NCBI RefSeq assembly: GCF_001194135.2
Contig: NC_069007.1
Location: 9,987,262 to 10,035,452 of the forward strand
Direction: 5' to 3'
Length of the DNA: 48,191 nt
Source: Octopus bimaculoides
Taxonomy: Eukaryota
In this document: positions 3,626-43,313 of the stretch, one piece after another
Layout of the letters: every line of letters starts with the position of its first letter
How positions within the stretch are numbered: position 1 is the stretch's first letter
Made by a program: the position numbers and the translations under genes
Notes under the pieces: model-generated
What the model was told of the DNA's origin: nothing
The model's input: the letters and a program-made list of their open reading frames with translations, nothing else
Database searches by the model: none

Positions 3626-4958
3626 GGCTTGTTGATTTGTTGTGTGTAATTAGCTCACGTGTTCGATTTTTTAAGGTTTTGGAAACACAGCCATGCATGC
3701 GCAAATCAACAAAAAAAAACATTTCTAAAGAAAGCCTTAAAAAATCATTTCTACGGAAAACTTTGCGGGAAGCAGTTCGCTTTGACTTGTGTCAAAAATG
3801 ATATATGATATATTACCATATATTGGAGATTTTGATGCGGCGTATTCGTTTCTGAAGGAGAAGAAAGTTCTGAATAGTGTCACTCCTCGACGTTCGTATT
3901 GCCAGAAAGAAATGACACTCATAAAACATAAGGAAGGGAAGCTATTTCTTTGCCCTACACATAAAACTGCAAAAGAGTCCATTAGGAAGTCTTCTTTTCT
4001 GGCAAACTCTAAATTACGATTACAGGATTTTATTCTTGTAACGTATTTGTGGTCCCATAATACAGCCCTTCATACATCAACTGAGATGACTGGTCTCTCA
4101 AATTCTACTGTTGTTTAATGGTACCAGTACATGAGGGACATTACAAGCAATTCTCTCTTGCGTAACCCCTACCAAATTTGTGGACTTGGGCACATCGTAG
4201 AAATAGATGAATCTATGATGTGCAAACGTAAATACAAAAGAGGTACAATGCCACAGGAGAGGTGGGTTTTTGGAGGATGGGATAGAGAGGATAAAAAAGG
4301 ATTTCTAGTCTTTGTACCTGACCGTTCTTCGGAAACTCTTTTACCCCTTATCAAGAAATTTATCAAACCAGGTACTACTGTGTATTCTGATTGTTGGAGT
4401 GCCTATAATGGGATTACTGAAATAGATGTGAACCCCAAATATACCCATTTCAAGGTGAACCATTCTAAAAATTTTGTTGATCCAACAACAGGTGTTCATA
4501 CCAATTCGGTTGAGTGTTATTGGAAGAACGCAAAACGACGATTTAAAACTATGATGGGGGTACACGCGGACATGGTCGAATCATATCTCGACGAATTTCT
4601 TTGGAGAGAACAGTATGGTAAAATGGGAAATGAATGTTTTGAAAACATTCTGAAGCACCTTTCAGAATGGTTCANNNNNNNNNNNNNNNNNNNNNNNNNN
4701 NNNNNNNNNNNNNNNNNNNNNNNNNNNNNNNNNNNNNNNNNNNNNNNNNNNNNNNNNNNNNNNNNNNNNNNNNNTTTTGTTTTTTTATCACATTACATTT
4801 TGATGTAATTATAATCTAAATTGTCTGTAAAGATTTGTAGAAAATTTCACTAAAAATATCTGAAATAACTTCTGAAAGTTATGGGGAAACGAAGTCGCTG
4901 GGTAACAAACATGCTTGGTATTCCAAAATTTGCCGGCATTGAGTCTAAATTAGAACCC
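3626..4958 (+). mobile_element. Merlin DNA transposon; probable right end, left terminus not seen
   Basis: Contains the transposase; the downstream about 190 bp ending GCCGGCATTGAGTCTAAATTAGAACC is repeated at 7915-8102. Confidence 0.6.
3798..4673 (+). pseudogene. Merlin (IS1016/IS1595, ISXO2-like) DDE transposase with one in-frame stop
   Basis: GHIVEIDES, WVFGG, YSDCW, VNHSKNFVDPTTGVHTNSVECYW and YLDEFLWR motifs. ORFs 3789-4118 and 4131-4673 are in the same frame, separated by TAA at 4116-4118. The end is hidden by a gap. Confidence 0.92.
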
Positions 4959-4989
4959 ACAATGAACGATTGCTTAATACTAATGTTTG

Positions 4990-5162
4990 TGGATTAGGAA
5001 AAAACTTTTCAAATATAAAGAGAAAGTATACAAAGATAAATATTTTCCATCTTGCTGCTATTTAGTTTTGAAAAATAAAATATGTCTTATGGTTTATTGT
5101 TGCTTATATTTTGAATTACAGACATATAAGGACACCAAAATATCCTTTTCTACTTTAGGCAC
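4990..5162 (-). mobile_element. hAT-like subterminal fragment, cut at the LTR junction
   Basis: Similar to 7690-7862 and to the reverse complement of 43087-43230. Confidence 0.55.
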
Positions 5163-5420
5163 TGTGGTGTATGCGTGCGAGTAGATGCAATCGTCTTACC
5201 TCGGTTTTCCTTTCGTCTGTCTTGCGGTATCCGATCCTCGAAGCTTGCCCCGACCCGAAGAACACTAGGAATAGCAGCTGCTTCTCCCAAACCGAGACCG
5301 TTGCTTAGCACGACTTCTCCTGACCACGACCCCGTTCGAAAAAGGCACGAATCCGATCGAGGCCCCCTCTGCCCTTCTTCCTCTTCCGGTCAGCTCCCCA
5401 GTCACTGACGTCATACCACA
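5163..5420 (-). mobile_element. LTR 1 (3' LTR of a Gypsy-type element)
   Basis: TG...CA ends; preceded on the minus strand by purine-rich AAGATCAGGGTGGCG (PPT) and an integrase; homologous to 6843-7131. Confidence 0.9.
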
Positions 5421-5452
5421 CGCCACCCTGATCTTAAAGATCACGTTCACCC

Positions 5453-6180
5453 CTACTCCAATTCGAAGTCCGCCATCCAACCGGGTGGGCGCCTTACATG
5501 CCGAGATCTTCTCAAGCCGGGTGGCTCGTTTCCATCGCGCTCTTCATCGGACGAGGTGGCTATCCTGCGCAGATCCAGCACGTGACGCGGCATTCCATCC
5601 ACAGATACATTATTTCTGGAAGTGACCGCTGTCACTGTTCCCCTGCCCCATTGTGATGTGCAGCGTGCCTTCGGCGGCTTGACCCAAACTTCCTCCCCTN
5701 NNNNNNNNNNNNNNNNNNNNNNNNNNNNNNNNNNNNNNNNNNNNNNNNNNNNNNNNNNNNNNNNNNNNNNNNNNNNNNNNNNNNNNNNNNNNNNNNNNNN
5801 NNNNNNNNNNNNNNNNNNNNNNNNNNNNNNNNNNNNNNNNNNNNNNNNNNNNNNNNNNNNNNNNNNNNNNNNNNNNNNNNNNNNNNGGGATGCCTCCATT
5901 CATACTTGAACACTGCTCTGTGCGGCACAGACTCTTCCGCTTGTCCGGATCGGGGAGACATGTTATACCAGTAGACCGCTTCCAGGGGCAAAATGTGCCC
6001 CCTTTCAGCCATGGCCTTGATCGTCCGATGGTGCCTCTCAACGATTCCGTTGCCACTCGGCCTATACGCCGCTCTAAATAATCGTCGCACCTTCCATCGG
6101 TCAAGCATCTCTCCCAACGCTTCCGAACGAAACGCCGCCCCGTTGTCCATTAGCAGTTCTTCCACGAGACCCCTCTCGAG
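5453..6180 (-). pseudogene. Gypsy-type integrase, second half of the catalytic core plus C-terminus (gap inside)
   Basis: [38 protein letters not shown] (rve D..E); C-terminal VWVKPP..SQWGRGTV..SVDGMPRHV. Confidence 0.92.
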
Positions 6181-6842
6181 ATATTTCCTTTATTCCGTCA
6201 ATGGGGTGCTACGGGTTTATTACTAGAATATGAAGATATGTTTCCATACCAAAATGACCTCAAAGAATTGGCTGCCAAACATGCATACAGCAAAGATGAT
6301 ATACAAAGAATACAACAATTGGCAGAACAAAATAACTTGGAAGTAATTCCTTTGGTTCAAACATTTGGTCATTTTGAGATGTTTTAGACACAGTAAAACT
6401 GATGATTGACCAAATTCTCTCATTGCATCCTCGCAGTCACCGTTTCCATATTGGAGCCGATGAGGTTTATCACATAGGGTTCTGTGAGCGGTGCAAGAAG
6501 ACAATGGCTTCAGAGAACTTAACAAACCAACAGATGTTCTTTGTTCATATTGAGAAAGTTGTGAAATATGTGAAATTGTGTAATATGTGTAAATGCAATC
6601 ATCTGACTGTTCTCATGTGGGATGATATGAGGTTTTGTGAACTGGCTCTTCTTAAAGAATCTAAACTAGGTGATCTTGTGGAACCAATGGTATGGCACTA
6701 TGTAACACAATTCGTCCTACCTAATGATATTTGGGACCGTTATTCCAAAGTATTTCCAAACATTTGGTTCGCAAGTTCTTTCAAAGGTGCTACCAGTTCT
6801 TCTGCCTACTTGACGAATATTATGTATCATGCCGAAATAGCT
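6181..6842 (+). pseudogene. HEXD: Processed, intronless fragment of hexosaminidase D (GH20), frameshifted by an internal deletion
   Basis: [37 protein letters not shown], then after a frame change MIDQILSLHP..FHIGADEVY..MWDDM..VEPMVWHY..WFASSFKGA; collinear with recalled human HEXD (HEXDC). Confidence 0.93.
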
Positions 6843-7131
6843 TGTGGTGTATGCGTGCGAGTAGATGTAATCGCCTTACCTAGGTTTTCCTTTCGTCGAC
6901 TGCGAGTCTGTCTTGCGGTATCCAATCCTTGAAGCTTGCCCCGACCCAAAGAACACTAGGAATAGCAGCTGCTTCTCCCAAACCTAGACCGTTGCTAAGC
7001 ACGTCTTCTCCTAACCACGACCCCGTTCTAAAATGCGCACGAATCCCGATTGAGGCTCGCTCTGCCCTTCTTCCTCTTCCGGTCAACTCGCCCGTCCGGT
7101 CAGCCTCCCCAGTCACTGACGTCATATCACA
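6843..7131 (-). mobile_element. LTR 2
   Basis: TG...CA ends; homologous to LTR 1, with two extra short segments and scattered substitutions. Confidence 0.9.
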
Positions 7132-7281
7132 TTTAACAATTTGGCTATAACAAAGGAGAAATATTTAATAATCGGTTGTAACTGAGACACAATATCTGCA
7201 AATTCCTTCGCTTCTTCATAACTTTCAGAAAAACGAATATTTTTCAATGAAATTTTCAAATATACATGCTGATACACATCA

Positions 7282-7536
7282 CATAATGTTTTCAAAACTC
7301 CCACAGGGGGTCCGTGGACAGCAAATACAATTTGATTTTATATATGTTTTTTAATCGAAATCATTTAATTGACAGTAAACCTATTTGTTAAATACTGTTA
7401 AATAAATAAATGTAAAAATATATGATATTTTAAGGAAATATTTATGTATAAATTTCATAAGCGTTTATAAGGGGGTCCCTAAGGTAAAGCCTGAAATATA
7501 AAGGGGTCCGCAAGTCAAAAAGTTTGAAAACCCCTG
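7282..7536. mobile_element. hAT/Charlie-like MITE
   Basis: Right TIR AGTTTGAAAACCCCTG; degenerate left TIR CATAATGTTTTCAAAACT; internal GGGGTCC repeats; no clean TSD. Confidence 0.55.
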
Positions 7537-7689
7537 ACTTAAGGCATCAAAAAAGAGAAGGAGCTCCACAGAAATGGTAAATGGTTCACAGCACAAAACA
7601 AAATCACTAAACTTGCTAAAATAATATTCGAAGTGGTGTTTATTATTGGAAATATGATGATTTCGAAGTGTTCATGTTGCCATAGTGAG

Positions 7690-7890
7690 GATCTGATCAA
7701 AATCTTTTCAAATATAAAGTGACAGTATATAAAAATAAACATTATTTTCCATCTTCCAATTAGTTTTGTTGCATTTTTAAAGATAAAATATATCTTATGA
7801 CTTCTTGTTTATATTTTGTATTACATATATAAAGGGACACCAAAATCTTTTAAGTACTTAGGGCCTCTACGGGTTTTAGTTTCAGCCCCG
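7690..7890 (-). mobile_element. hAT-like element terminus
   Basis: Reverse complement begins CGGGGCTGAAACTAAAACCCGTAGAGGCCCTAAG, matching CAGGGCTAGG..TAGAGGCCCTTAGCAC at 43087. Confidence 0.6.
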
Positions 7891-8102
7891 TCTGCATGTG
7901 TGTGCGCGACCACCATTTTGTTTTTGTTTTTTTATCACATTACATTTTGATGTAATTATAATCTAAATTGTTTGAAAAGATTTGTAGAAAATTTCACTAA
8001 AAATATCCATATTTCTGAAAGTTATGGGGAAACAAAGTTGCTGGGTAACAGACATGTATAGGTATTCCAAAATTTGCCGGCATTGAGTCTAAATTAGAAT
8101 CC
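7891..8102 (+). mobile_element. Second copy of the Merlin-associated 3' terminal region
   Basis: Direct repeat of 4776-4958. Confidence 0.6.
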
Positions 8103-8109
8103 ACTAACT

Positions 8110-8485: not shown

Positions 8486-9436
8486 AATGATAAGGTCGTT
8501 CCTTGATTGTTGTTTCTTAATTCCAGGTCAACCATTATGGAGCAAATGTACAATCAAATGCATTCCACCCACGACCATCGTCTTTTTTATTGTGGAGAGA
8601 TATCTAAGACAAAATTACCTATTGTGTGTGTGTGTTCGTGCATGTGTGTGTGTGTCCTTTAATTTTAAGACATGTAATATGGAGGGAGATTTGGTTGCTA
8701 CTTCTAGCAAACAGAGCGACTTCATAGCGACTCCCTGTGGGACCCATGTTATACAATAGTGCCGATATTAATAATATAAATATAACTATAGCTCACAATC
8801 TGTTAGGAAAATATTTATGGAACTGTGATGCATACATTCAAGTGGAGATTGAAAATGGAAGATTTGTTTTTATTTGCAATAATTAATGATAAAGATATCA
8901 TTCAGAAATTGTTTCAGTTCATTAGAACGTTTCCATTTTTGTCCTTTTTTTCTTTTTTTCTCTGCAAGTGATTTATTAAAATATATTTTAATTTACGGTC
9001 TACTTTTAAAGTTCGAATAAAATGTTAATTTTTCAAAAATTAGTTTTTGAATTTCACGACTATTTAACGGAGTTAAACGAAACGAAAAGCAAAATTACGA
9101 AGATAATAATTATGATTTTCTTTTTATATTTCATAAATAATTTCAAAATTAACTTGGTAATTTGTACAAACTAATTATATTAAATCTAATTAATCTTTTT
9201 ATCTAAATTTTGTTAATGAAATGTTCAGTGAGACGTCTGAGGTTACATTGGAATGTTGTGTCGTCTGCTCCGTACGTCAGCATTAGAGAAAATTACTCTC
9301 CGACACTGAAACACACTCACAACCTTCCAAATTCAGCAATTTTATATCGATTATCATAGATATTGCTTTGATTCCTGAAAACAAGCAATATTCTTTCTCA
9401 ATAAGTGAACGTTTTCAAGTGTGCAGAGCAGTCGAT

Positions 9437-11404
9437 ATGGCCGATAAAGTTAATCTTCTAACAGCTGTCCTATGTTACATGGACAATCACGGTATTCTAA
9501 ATACTGTGAAGAACGTTTGCAAGGAATATGAGCAAATGGGAAATTGTACATTTTATTCGTTCGTCGTTGAAATTGATTCTATAGAATTTCTTAATGAAAA
9601 CCCATTTCTTGGAAATCTGCTTTTGAATTCTCCTCGTGAAGCTACGCTGCTATTTCAAGAGATTTTATATTATTATATTACACTTATTAAGCTTCTTAGT
9701 GAAGACATAAAACTTAATCAAATTTCAGTTGTAATACGTTTGATATCTATTCCTAATATTGCTGGTGTTTACGTCATAAGAACATTCTGTGACCTTCTTG
9801 CAATGCCTGCGAAAAACCGAATGATAACTTTGCAGGGTGTCGTTATGGGAATGACGGCTTTGTCAAAGTATACCCACCACACCATATATGCATGTCCAAT
9901 CACAGAATGCCCTGGATCTTCCAGTAAAGAATACATAAGAACGCATATTCCTGGTGCCACAGAAGCTGAGATAATTCGGAACAATTTTTGCTGCTTTTAT
10001 TGTGGGTCGATTTTAGAGGAAGTAAAACCATGTCGATATTTAGCTGATAAGATTATTGCTGAAGTCATTCCTTCCTGGGCATTTATGGACTCTAAAAGTT
10101 TCCGGCATCAAGCCATTCTTGTCTACATCAGAGGAGACTTAATCAAAAAAGTTGGTCTGGGAAAAGAACATCAGTTTTTTGGGATTGTCAGACGTGATTA
10201 CCAAGACAGTGAAATATTAGTTACCATTGAGGCAAATAACATTACAAACATTCCTTATGACCTTTTTGCTCGTCATTTTAAATGCTTACCAAACAGTCTT
10301 TGGGACATATTTCAAAATACATCAGAAACACCATGGAGGTTTGCTTCTAGTCTGGCATTTTACTTTGCTGATAAAATTGTACCTCCAGGAAGTTTCTGGG
10401 TGTTAAAATTAGCCATTCTTTTAAACCTTGTATGCAGTGGAAATGAGAACACTGATCCTTTACATCTTCTTGTAATTGGGGAAGAAAGCCACATTATATC
10501 CAAAATCTTGCTCTACTCTCTGAGGTTTTGTCCCCGAGCCATCAGACATACTGCCAATAATTATTTAACAGGCAAGGTAACTGCCGATACATATTGTAGC
10601 GCACCATATTTTGTGGAAGCTGGGTCTTTATTATTAGCATCGAATGGAGTATGTTATCTCGGAGATGTTTCACAATGTACGAAAAATACAACTGAAAGAT
10701 TGACATCAATCTTGATCGAAAAGAAAATTAAACTTGAAGTGGGGTCAAAGTTTACCGAAGGCCTCCCACACCTCATTGAATACCCATTAAAATGCAGAAT
10801 TTGGGCTTTTGACTCAACAAACTGTAAAATCACTGAAAAAGGTGATGATCTTTTATCAAAGAGCAATTTTGTAAGTAGATTAGGTTATCTGATGGACGCT
10901 TTTAACTTTATTGTTTTCACCAGTCCTCATGAGAATTATAACATCATGAACCACATTTTTGAAAGTTATTTTGATGACGATCACACTGCATCTATTTTAG
11001 ATTCTGATCTCCTTCAGCTTTTAACCAATTTACGAGCACAAGAAGTCAGTCTGACTGACAAAAGCGAACACATTTTGAAGACTTACTATATCGCTTCTCG
11101 AAGAGCCCGGAGCATTTCCATGGATTCTTCCCTGGTTCCAGTGTCAGCTTTGCAAGTTCTTGCTCAGATTACTCAGAGTTTTGCTAAACTGAGTCTCCGA
11201 CACAAAGCTACTGTGCCTGATGCCATTATGGCAATACGACTCTATGAAGAGGCATTAATGATGAGATTTGGAATGTCAGTATTTGATGTCCATCTCTCTC
11301 AGCAAAATGACAGTAACGATATCAACACGTTTCTCCAGTCTAATGATGCAGCCATGATGAACTTCTTTGCACAGTTTAAACAATGTTGTACCAGCTTCTC
11401 TTAA
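9437..11404 (+). CDS. MCMDC2: Minichromosome maintenance domain-containing protein 2 (meiotic MCM pseudo-ATPase), single coding exon, 655 aa
   Basis: Uninterrupted ORF from ATG 9437. Matches recalled MCMDC2 features: LQGVVMGMTALSKYT, CPITECP, YIRTHIPGATE..IRNNFCC, VEAGSLLLASNGVCYLGD, YYIASRR, A+LSLR, LYEEALMMRFG. Confidence 0.93.
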   Translation: MADKVNLLTAVLCYMDNHGILNTVKNVCKEYEQMGNCTFYSFVVEIDSIEFLNENPFLGNLLLNSPREATLLFQEILYYYITLIKLLSEDIKLNQISVVIRLISIPNIAGVYVIRTFCDLLAMPAKNRMITLQGVVMGMTALSKYTHHTIYACPITECPGSSSKEYIRTHIPGATEAEIIRNNFCCFYCGSILEEVKPCRYLADKIIAEVIPSWAFMDSKSFRHQAILVYIRGDLIKKVGLGKEHQFFGIVRRDYQDSEILVTIEANNITNIPYDLFARHFKCLPNSLWDIFQNTSETPWRFASSLAFYFADKIVPPGSFWVLKLAILLNLVCSGNENTDPLHLLVIGEESHIISKILLYSLRFCPRAIRHTANNYLTGKVTADTYCSAPYFVEAGSLLLASNGVCYLGDVSQCTKNTTERLTSILIEKKIKLEVGSKFTEGLPHLIEYPLKCRIWAFDSTNCKITEKGDDLLSKSNFVSRLGYLMDAFNFIVFTSPHENYNIMNHIFESYFDDDHTASILDSDLLQLLTNLRAQEVSLTDKSEHILKTYYIASRRARSISMDSSLVPVSALQVLAQITQSFAKLSLRHKATVPDAIMAIRLYEEALMMRFGMSVFDVHLSQQNDSNDINTFLQSNDAAMMNFFAQFKQCCTSFS

Positions 11405-22428: not shown

Positions 22429-23324
22429 AAGGCGGAGGTAATAATAATCACATTAAATGGCAAGAGTAAAGGAGGAGATTAACTTCATTTCTGTCAAATA
22501 TTAATTAATGCATTTGCCATTCTAGCTCTCAATTTCAATGCATTAAACTTGTCACTTGTCATGAGATAATTATTATTTTCTACATAGATACATTGGATGA
22601 ATGAATCAGACATTTACTGGTTGTGGAATGTGACCCATCATATGACAGTATGACAGGTAACACTACTGTATGTGTGTGTTTTGAGCATGTGTGTATTTGT
22701 GTGTGTGTGTGTCTGTCTGTCTGTCTGTGTGTTTGAGCACGTGTGTATTTGTGTGTATTTGTGCATGTGTGTGTTTGAGCATGACAGTAATTTACTGTAA
22801 TATATTTTTGTGTCAACCATCTCAGTTAAATCCAATCAGGATTTTTAAACCATTAAAAAACATAAAAATATTCCTGTACAGTTCCTATTTTAGCCTCGAT
22901 GCTGCGAAGTAAATTTATTGTACGAATAATAATAAGTTAAAATTAATATAAACCCATTTTCAATCTCTCAGTTTTGAATTTATTTATTTTGCAAGAATTT
23001 TAATCTGAAATCATGTGCTGAAACCAGTTTTTGTTGTATTTTGAAAGTGTGATATTAAAATCTACAAACACATTCATTGCTAGTTGCTGTTTGTCTATTA
23101 AACTTTTTCTTATTTTCTCGAAATTCTTTTTTCTTTCCACATCCTCTGTGAGGCTCTTTCAATGGGAATATATTTTCTATAGCCATTGAAATGGCTACAG
23201 AGATGCTGTGATGAAAAAGTATGAGGGGAAGAGAGGAAGAATATAAATAAACACCCATAGAATATGCTTGTAACCTTTAATAGAATCGCTCTCCTAAAAC
23301 ATATTAACACATTTTCAGTATTAT

Positions 23325-23745
23325 TCTTCTACCTGCTTCAGTTATTAGACTACGGCCATCATGGAGCACCACTTTGAGGAATTTTAGTTGAAAGAATCAA
23401 CCCCAGTGTTTATTTTTAAGCCTGATACTCATTGTATTGCTCTCTTTCTCTGAACTGCTAAGTTACAGGGATATAAACACACTAACTTCGGTTGCCAAGT
23501 GATGGCAGGAAACAAACACAGACACCAAGACACACACATACTCACATACACGCATGCATGCATGCATGCACGTACACACACACACACATGTATATACGAT
23601 GGGCTCCTTTCAGTTTCCATCTACAAAATCCATTCACAAGTCTTTGAACTGCCCGAGGCTGTAGTAGAAGATACTTGCCCAAGGTGGGACTGAACCTAGA
23701 ACCATGAGGTTGGAAAGCAAGCTTCTAAGCATGCAGCCATACATG
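23325..23745 (-). mobile_element. Family A SINE, diverged
   Basis: Reverse complement of the family A unit. Confidence 0.85.
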
Positions 23746-43086: not shown

Positions 43087-43230
43087 CAGGGCTAGGTTAA
43101 GTAAGACCTATAGAGGCCCTTAGCACTTAAAAAGATTTTGGTACCACCATAAATAGGTAATTTCAAAATATAGACAATAATGAACCATAAAATAAATTTT
43201 TATTTTTATTTTTCAAAATGAAATAAGACT
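43087..43230 (+). mobile_element. hAT-like terminus running into a gap
   Basis: CAGGGCTAGG..TAGAGGCCCTTAGCACTTAAAAAGATTTTGG; matches 7690-7890 in reverse. Confidence 0.6.
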
Positions 43231-43313
43231 AANNNNNNNNNNNNNNNNNNNNNNNNNNNNNNNNNNNNNNNNNNNNNNNNNNNNNNNNNNNNNNNNNNNN
43301 NNNNNNNNNNNNN

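Follow-up and report, generated by a model that had tools for sequence, protein, structure and literature searches.

How does a spliced piece of a host gene come to lie, in reverse orientation, within retrotransposon sequence? This question is raised by a locus in the genome of Octopus bimaculoides (NCBI RefSeq assembly GCF_001194135.2, contig NC_069007.1, positions 9,987,262 to 10,035,452 of the forward strand). The whole stretch analysed, 48,191 nucleotides (nt), is referred to here as the window, and all positions are counted from its first letter. Between 5163 and 7131, a long terminal repeat (LTR1), a purine tract, the 3' half of an integrase gene on the minus strand, a fragment of the host gene HEXD on the plus strand and a second long terminal repeat (LTR2) follow one another in this order. 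The arrangement had been proposed in a sequence-only reading of the window, and all of its parts lie where that reading had placed them or a few bases off, which is far above chance; the purine tract is the weak member of the series. We find that the HEXD copy is real, young and dead. In the explanation that we favour, with about even confidence, it is an immobile, lineage-specific partial retrocopy that entered the DNA of an LTR retrotransposon on the plus-strand (primer) side of reverse transcription.

The HEXD fragment (6181 to ~6837, plus strand) matched the parent genes of O. bimaculoides and Octopus vulgaris exon by exon. Exon 3 occupies 6181-6290, exon 4 6291-6378, exon 6 6379-6465, exon 7 6466-6657 (where 12 nt are inserted and 3 nt deleted), exon 8 6658-6726 and the first half of exon 9 6727 to ~6831/6837, all on the plus strand; the 82-nt exon 5 is absent, leaving a clean join at 6378|6379. 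The parent gene is intron-bearing and spans 38 kb in O. bimaculoides and 45 kb in O. vulgaris, and in the fragment five introns are removed exactly at GT-AG sites, in addition to the one clean exon skip. With six exons joined at the GT-AG introns of such 38-45 kb parents, the earlier proposal of a spliced cDNA is borne out, and the objection that the parent might itself be intronless falls. At the protein level, the piece matched Pfam Glyco_hydro_20 (E=2.5e-9) and an O. vulgaris HEXD-like protein with 84% identity (207/247 columns, with a 28-column gap, E=1e-149). The octopus HEXD cluster was recovered with a padded query, the protein search returning only records of 0.7-1.75x the query length. 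A tblastn search of the 48-kb window found no HEXD outside 6178-6836.

To what extent does the copy differ from its parent? Over 639 nt, 14 substitutions separate it from the O. bimaculoides gene, and polarisation with O. vulgaris as outgroup assigned 6 to the retrocopy lineage and 8 to the parent lineage. Relative to both parent genes, the copy further carries an in-frame 12-nt insertion at 6572-6583 (TTGTGTAATATG), apparently a slipped duplication of the neighbouring TGTAAATGCAAT, together with a 3-nt deletion, likewise in frame, at ~6624. The 14 substitutions, the two indels and the exon skip together identify it as a genuine genomic paralogue and not as cDNA contamination. Two derived residues, the S in ILSLHP and the F in NIWFASS, are common to the retrocopy and O. 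bimaculoides; as judged from these alignments, the copy was formed in the O. bimaculoides lineage and is distinct from the parent locus. On the parent lineage, 6 of the 8 substitutions are synonymous. A neutral clock would predict more changes in the retrocopy than its 6, these being small numbers.

The absence of exon 5 (27 codons plus 1 nt) shifts the reading frame, so that the HEXD frame is broken once, at 6378|6379. The clean loss of this exon points to an exon-skipped, out-of-frame transcript as the source, and the retrocopy may thus preserve a rare, non-productive HEXD splice form. Exon 5 lies at about 23216-23332 of the fetched O. bimaculoides parent-locus sequence and is present in the aligned annotated octopus isoforms (all but one cluster member were aligned). 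Downstream of the frameshift, an open reading frame (ORF) of 176 codons (6402-6932, plus strand) leads from exons 6-9a into LTR2 and holds the glycoside hydrolase family 20 (GH20) motif HIGADEV, as had been noted before; the protein collection contained no start-to-stop match to this ORF. The fragment is devoid of codons 1-36, exon 5 and ~210 C-terminal codons, and no single open frame was found to hold a complete GH20 catalytic domain. Given these losses, HIGADEV has no functional meaning here, nor would an intact catalytic motif in any such fragment.

The HEXD piece is enclosed by retrotransposon sequence. LTR1 (5163-5420, minus strand, 258 nt) and LTR2 (6843-7131, minus strand, 289 nt, with both canonical ends complete) are direct repeats of each other with the termini TGTGG...CCACA. 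Their GC content of 0.54-0.56 exceeds that of the window (0.37), and they differ by 17 substitutions over 258 aligned positions and by four indels of 11, 1, 1 and 18 nt. A 25-mer common to both had no match in metagenome and viral collections, where octopus DNA is not expected. LTR1 carries the palindrome TGACGTCA near its end adjoining a 32-nt spacer (5421-5452, minus strand; element sense ..AGATCAGGGTGGCG|TGTGG), which separates it from the integrase stop codon. Within this spacer, the weak purine tract AGGGTGG is a putative polypurine tract (PPT), its purine richness being modest. The minus-strand integrase and the purine tract beside LTR1 together place the element on the minus strand, with LTR1 as its 3' LTR and LTR2 as its 5' LTR. 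The inner (U5) end of LTR2 consequently points toward HEXD. No TGG-type primer-binding site (PBS) follows this 5' LTR; read in the sense of the element, the bases here are CCACA|AGCTATTTCGGCATGATAC, and HEXD starts after 5-11 nt.

Of the internal genes of the element, only part of the integrase is left. The second half of the catalytic core (5887-6180, minus strand; ..DNGAAF..NGIVERHH...WRHP) forms an open frame that is cut on its N-terminal side at 6180, and the C-terminal domain (5453-5699, minus strand; GEEVWVKP...FELE) is likewise open up to a stop codon at 5453-5455. The core fragment gave a weak match to Pfam rve. For the integrase, the best named relative is an Octopus sinensis protein with 84% identity, and further matches came from cephalopods (Acanthosepion, Argonauta) and gastropods. 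At the nucleotide level, the core is 84% identical to the O. sinensis element, with an alignment that ends at 6177, and the C-terminal domain 71% identical. In the relatives, the domains RVT_3/RNase_H, Integrase_H2C2 and rve lie upstream, of which the window retains only the 3' half of the core, followed by the C-terminal domain; a pol order of RNase H followed by integrase is that of Ty3/Gypsy, BEL/Pao or retrovirus-like elements. No remnant of gag, protease, reverse transcriptase (RT) or the N-terminal half of the integrase was found in the window. The O. sinensis element and a related ENA contig showed integrase homology only, with neither LTR homology nor an intact element. The HEXD cargo, on the plus strand and antisense to the minus-strand integrase as originally described, stands in the place of gag, protease and RT, and it replaces half of the integrase in addition.

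How firmly the parts are joined differs across the locus. A single contig (5887-20534) holds the integrase core, HEXD, LTR2 and 13 kb of flank. LTR1 and the integrase C-terminus are located on a 925-bp contig (4775-5699) made up of dispersed repeats, LTR1 and the integrase tail, with runs of N on either side (4675-4774 and 5700-5886). The two-LTR unit is therefore described as scaffolded, whereas the linkage of integrase, HEXD and LTR2 lies within one contig. The gap at 5700-5886 is written as 187 N, a length that is only an estimate; homologues predict ~17 missing codons (~51-54 nt), and alignment to a cuttlefish homologue showed exactly 17 residues to be absent between the two integrase pieces. 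These pieces are consecutive, co-oriented, correctly ordered and non-overlapping, and their frames differ across the gap as written.

The two junctions of the HEXD fragment carry most of the information on how it was acquired. On the left, the sequence reads ..CCCCTCTCGAG|ATATTTCC, with exon 3 starting at ATATTTCC (6181), the position that the sequence-only reading gave for this junction. HEXD exon 2 ends with ..GCTGAG in both O. bimaculoides and O. vulgaris. The three nucleotides GAG at 6178-6180 are thus common to the antisense integrase (CTCGAG) and to the HEXD mRNA (GCTGAG|ATATTT), which places the crossover 0-3 nt from the boundary of exons 2 and 3. Around this point the two partners agree at 9 of 12 positions when the O. 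sinensis element (84% identity) stands in for the lost integrase continuation; the background probability of such similarity is 4e-4, and about 0.011 given the three exact matches. On the right, identity to the O. bimaculoides parent is perfect up to 6831, after which CCGAAA faces TCGACA (4/6) and TAGCT faces ACCAT. Homology accordingly ends at ~6831-6837 and not at 6842 as first proposed, and is followed by a filler, TAGCT, at 6838-6842, which possibly begins as early as 6832 and measures 5-11 nt in all. The exact 11-mer at this junction occurs nowhere else in the window, in the O. vulgaris HEXD locus or in the O. sinensis element. Poly(A) and a 3' untranslated region are absent, with HEXD ending in the middle of exon 9, only 5-11 nt away from the very U5 edge of an LTR that is complete. 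The microhomology, the short filler and the lack of poly(A) agree with capture by an LTR retrotransposon and not with a pseudogene of the type made by long interspersed nuclear elements (LINEs).

The layout of the locus, the spliced nature of the copy, its parent gene and the sequences of its junctions are shown directly; from this anatomy and the textbook scheme of reverse transcription, we infer on which strand capture took place and in what order the steps followed. The introns were removed at GT-AG sites in the sense orientation, and the template was therefore a sense mRNA. As this sense mRNA lies antisense in the element, it was either copied into the element's plus strand or joined as inverted DNA. 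At the U5 terminus, the tRNA primer adjoins minus-strand DNA, and plus-strand strong-stop DNA comes to its end. It is the position of the HEXD end at this natural strong-stop end that favours plus-strand synthesis; we estimate that a random deletion in an internal region of ~5 kb would leave HEXD this close to the LTR edge with a chance of ~0.1-0.2%, roughly 1 in 500.

In the proposed sequence of events, plus-strand strong-stop DNA (U3-R-U5) would have overrun the U5 end, the usual position of the tRNA primer, and synthesis would have continued onto a HEXD mRNA, either one that had annealed at this place as an aberrant primer or one acquired after run-off. The mRNA would then have been copied from mid exon 9 back to the junction of exons 2 and 3. 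At the GAG-anchored microsimilarity, the 3' end may have moved to the growing minus-strand DNA within the integrase gene, in a step that would replace the second, PBS-guided jump, and both strands would then have been completed. The predicted product, LTR – (5-11 nt) – antisense HEXD – integrase 3' half – PPT – LTR, would have been without PBS, leader, gag, protease and RT and thus dead on arrival. That the locus records a type of reverse-transcription error as yet without description in LTR elements, in which a host mRNA replaces the tRNA primer or joins run-off strong-stop DNA so that antisense cargo becomes fused to U5, is a broader proposition that we regard as doubtful.

Several observations weigh against capture during reverse transcription. 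A unit inserted by integrase should carry a target-site duplication, and none is seen: GGCAC| precedes the unit on the left and |TTTAA follows on the right. An extra step would have to account for this, be it a later rearrangement, recombination between elements or a mis-scaffolded LTR1 contig. The left flank (5000-5162, ending GGCAC) is a copy of a dispersed repeat, B, that is broken by LTR1, and the continuation of B as it occurs from 7867 onward was not found right of LTR2; the right flank (7132-7698, beginning TTTAA) holds neither a duplication of the left flank nor a continuation of HEXD. LTR1 and the integrase C-terminus sit on a small, repeat-rich contig between two gaps and are connected by a scaffold join only. 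The 17 differences between the LTRs exceed the ~5 expected from the divergence of the HEXD retrocopy lineage (6/639; P=1e-5); CpG sites account for 8 of the differences, and non-CpG sites alone give P=0.06. This comparison hints, and is suggestive only, that the LTRs predate the capture or derive from non-sister copies. The 9-of-12 similarity at the left junction relies on a proxy from another species. Finally, a limited literature search found no precedent for antisense capture, or for plus-strand capture of host mRNA, by LTR elements.

In part, these difficulties may have their origin in the assembly. The LTR1 contig may have been misplaced by scaffolding, through read pairs mapping to repeats, in which case the left half would come from another copy of the family, only the integrase core, HEXD and LTR2 would be linked, and either capture model would fit. 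The position of this 925-bp contig between the gaps at 4675-4774 and 5700-5886, its content of dispersed repeats and element sequence, the missing target-site duplication together with the discontinuous flanks, the LTR divergence above expectation and a written gap of 187 nt, far longer than the homologues predict, all agree with such an artefact. It sits less well with two integrase pieces that are ordered, co-oriented and non-overlapping with a plausibly small missing stretch between them, and read pairs anchored in the unique HEXD sequence would reach the contig and provide legitimate evidence for the join. We consider the artefact possible, albeit on the unlikely side.

The main rival to capture during reverse transcription is capture after integration. 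In that scenario, a double-strand break in a resident element, or a large internal deletion that extended from just within the 5' LTR to the middle of the integrase, would have been mended by end joining with a 650-bp HEXD cDNA fragment. The orientation of the insert would then be random, and antisense cargo would need no special account; the GAG microhomology and the short filler are typical of end joining, and the LTRs seem to predate the HEXD copy. In yeast and mammals, breaks are well established to capture reverse-transcribed RNA. What speaks against repair is that the breakpoint would have come to lie 5-11 nt from the LTR edge by chance (~0.1-0.2%), and that the resident element's own target-site duplication, which would be expected, is absent, so that an additional event is needed. 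Although repair insertion and reverse-transcription capture are indistinguishable on present data, we judge the former to be unlikely. The same improbable breakpoint beside the LTR edge burdens a nested history, which we think very unlikely: a 5'-truncated HEXD pseudogene of the LINE type would have been inserted into the integrase gene, and a later deletion, beginning in mid exon 9 and reaching the inner margin of the 5' LTR, would have taken away the 3' half of HEXD, the poly(A) tail and the internal region of the element as far as the leader (the remaining integrase, RT, protease and gag). Truncation at the 5' end and microhomology at the 5' junction are indeed typical of LINE-mediated retrocopies, and internal deletions are common in old elements, but the locus shows no poly(A), 3' untranslated region, target-site duplication, N-terminal half of the integrase or remnant of RT or gag.

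The sequence-only reading had also offered a non-autonomous LTR element with HEXD as its cargo; such an element would be mobilised in trans and exist in several copies with identical junctions. The two LTRs and the PPT-like tract would agree with this, and published chimeras can go through further rounds of retroposition (PMC5131818). However, no PBS-like sequence follows the 5' LTR, the leader and gag region, where packaging signals usually reside, is gone, and a target-site duplication is lacking. A second copy of the chimera was found neither in the window nor in three other octopus loci nor in the ENA contig, a search that is short of genome-wide. Of the earlier interpretation, capture by an LTR retrotransposon thus fits the junctions, and the mobile cargo element, without PBS and target-site duplication, is not supported; we hold the latter to be highly improbable. 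Least credible of all is an origin at the RNA level, in which an antisense LTR element, situated within the HEXD gene or upstream of it, provided a cryptic donor in antisense integrase; splicing or back-splicing would have joined this donor to the acceptor of exon 3 before the chimera was retrocopied. The integrase|HEXD junction does lie within 0-3 nt of this acceptor, but the GAG shared with the end of exon 2 means that an ordinary mRNA with exons 2 and 3 joined explains the left junction. Moreover, the parent loci of O. bimaculoides and O. vulgaris contain no LTR or integrase (intron 2 being gap-free in O. bimaculoides), the proxy integrase reads AAA after CTCGAG and not a GT donor, and the canonical ends of both LTRs would be left unexplained.

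Two further candidates were rejected. A back-splice or circular RNA, suggested by a layout that equals a circular permutation of HEXD-LTR-PPT-integrase, was ruled out by the canonical TG..CA ends and by the absence of a GT donor in the proxy. A solo LTR inside an older pseudogene, with HEXD resuming right of LTR2, was ruled out by the tblastn search. Capture during reverse transcription remains our favoured account, and every model requires something extra for the missing duplication, namely a rearrangement, recombination between elements, insertion independent of integrase or a misplaced LTR1 contig.

The surroundings of the chimera are rich in repeats. Modules A-B lie to its left (4775-5162) and B'-A' to its right (7699-8104), with A and A' 92% and B and B' 78% identical. 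Related pieces of dispersed repeats occur at 7206-7257 (inverted) and 43099-43232 of the window, and pieces of 40-50 nt related to these modules are present in the unlinked HEXD parent locus of O. bimaculoides. The A and B modules are generic repeats and do not support continuity of the flanks at this place. A separate derivative of a DNA transposon, with an ISXO2-like DDE transposase domain (4131-4673, plus strand; PF12762, E=1.5e-21) whose frame runs into the gap at 4675, lies shortly before the LTR1 contig. An uninterrupted ORF of 657 codons (9431-11401, plus strand), 2.3 kb downstream of LTR2, matched the Pfam MCM P-loop and MCM AAA-lid domains; a longer frame starts from a TTG at 9368. 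The exact product (655-aa query) had no record in the protein-position index. This intronless MCM-domain gene beside a retrocopy could itself be a retrogene. Over the whole 48-kb window there are fourteen N-gaps, microsatellites of the types (AT)n, (GT)n and (CA)n are very abundant, and most of the 'long ORFs' are translated microsatellites or runs of N.

If capture during reverse transcription is correct, an antisense chimera with its host end at the U5/primer position would indicate that plus-strand synthesis, too, recruits host RNA. This would widen the range of structures to look for in retrocopy mining and add a documented example for the repeat-rich genomes of cephalopods. Should LTR2 still be an active promoter, ~650 nt of antisense HEXD exons would be transcribed, and these transcripts could contribute to regulation of the parent gene by small RNAs or antisense RNA, as is reported for retrocopy-derived silencing RNAs in some insects (PMC9674220; bioRxiv 10.1101/2022.04.04.486979). 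As a single dead copy, the locus probably has no biological impact unless antisense transcription is shown. The case further illustrates that draft scaffolds can make a one-sided chimera resemble a complete two-LTR element.

How does the octopus locus compare with known systems that move host sequence? Like processed pseudogenes produced by LINEs (L1-type), the HEXD copy is spliced, 5'-truncated and non-functional; unlike these, it has no poly(A) and no target-site duplication, its 3' end lies within an exon, and retrotransposon sequence directly adjoins both of its ends. With cDNA or RNA-templated insertions at repaired breaks it shares an orientation that in those cases is random, microhomology plus filler and the absence of a target-site duplication, but break repair does not account for a junction that coincides with an LTR terminus, as it does here. 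A third parallel is the transduction of oncogenes by retroviruses, which proceeds by read-through and non-homologous recombination during reverse transcription. There, too, intronless host exons come to lie between retroviral sequences, replicative genes are replaced and the product is defective. In contrast to the octopus locus, the transduced oncogene is in sense orientation and expressed from the LTR, the PBS and the packaging signal are kept, and a helper virus provides mobilisation.

The closest resemblance in layout is to the chimeras of LTR-mediated retroposition, by which young retrocopies are reported to arise in Drosophila and in a number of other animals (PMC5131818); among the earlier cases, Tan et al. 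2016, Genome Res (PMC5131818), cite Ty1 of yeast and Bs1 of maize. In these chimeras, internal ORFs are replaced, the fusion points show a median microsimilarity of 6 bp, and some junctions contain 2-26 bp of de novo sequence (PMC5131818). Correspondingly, the octopus unit holds an intronless, partial host cDNA in place of internal ORFs, here from gag through half of the integrase; its two fusion points show microsimilarity and a few de novo nucleotides, respectively, poly(A) is absent and, as scaffolded, an LTR lies on each side. It departs from these chimeras in its host, a cephalopod, in the missing target-site duplication, and in a fusion point at the U5 terminus with loss of the PBS. Its cargo, moreover, is antisense, whereas the published model of minus-strand switching yields sense cargo and a retained PBS; Tan et al. 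do not discuss the orientation of the cargo relative to the element (PMC5131818). Set against these systems, the locus is a rare antisense variant of LTR-mediated retroposition.

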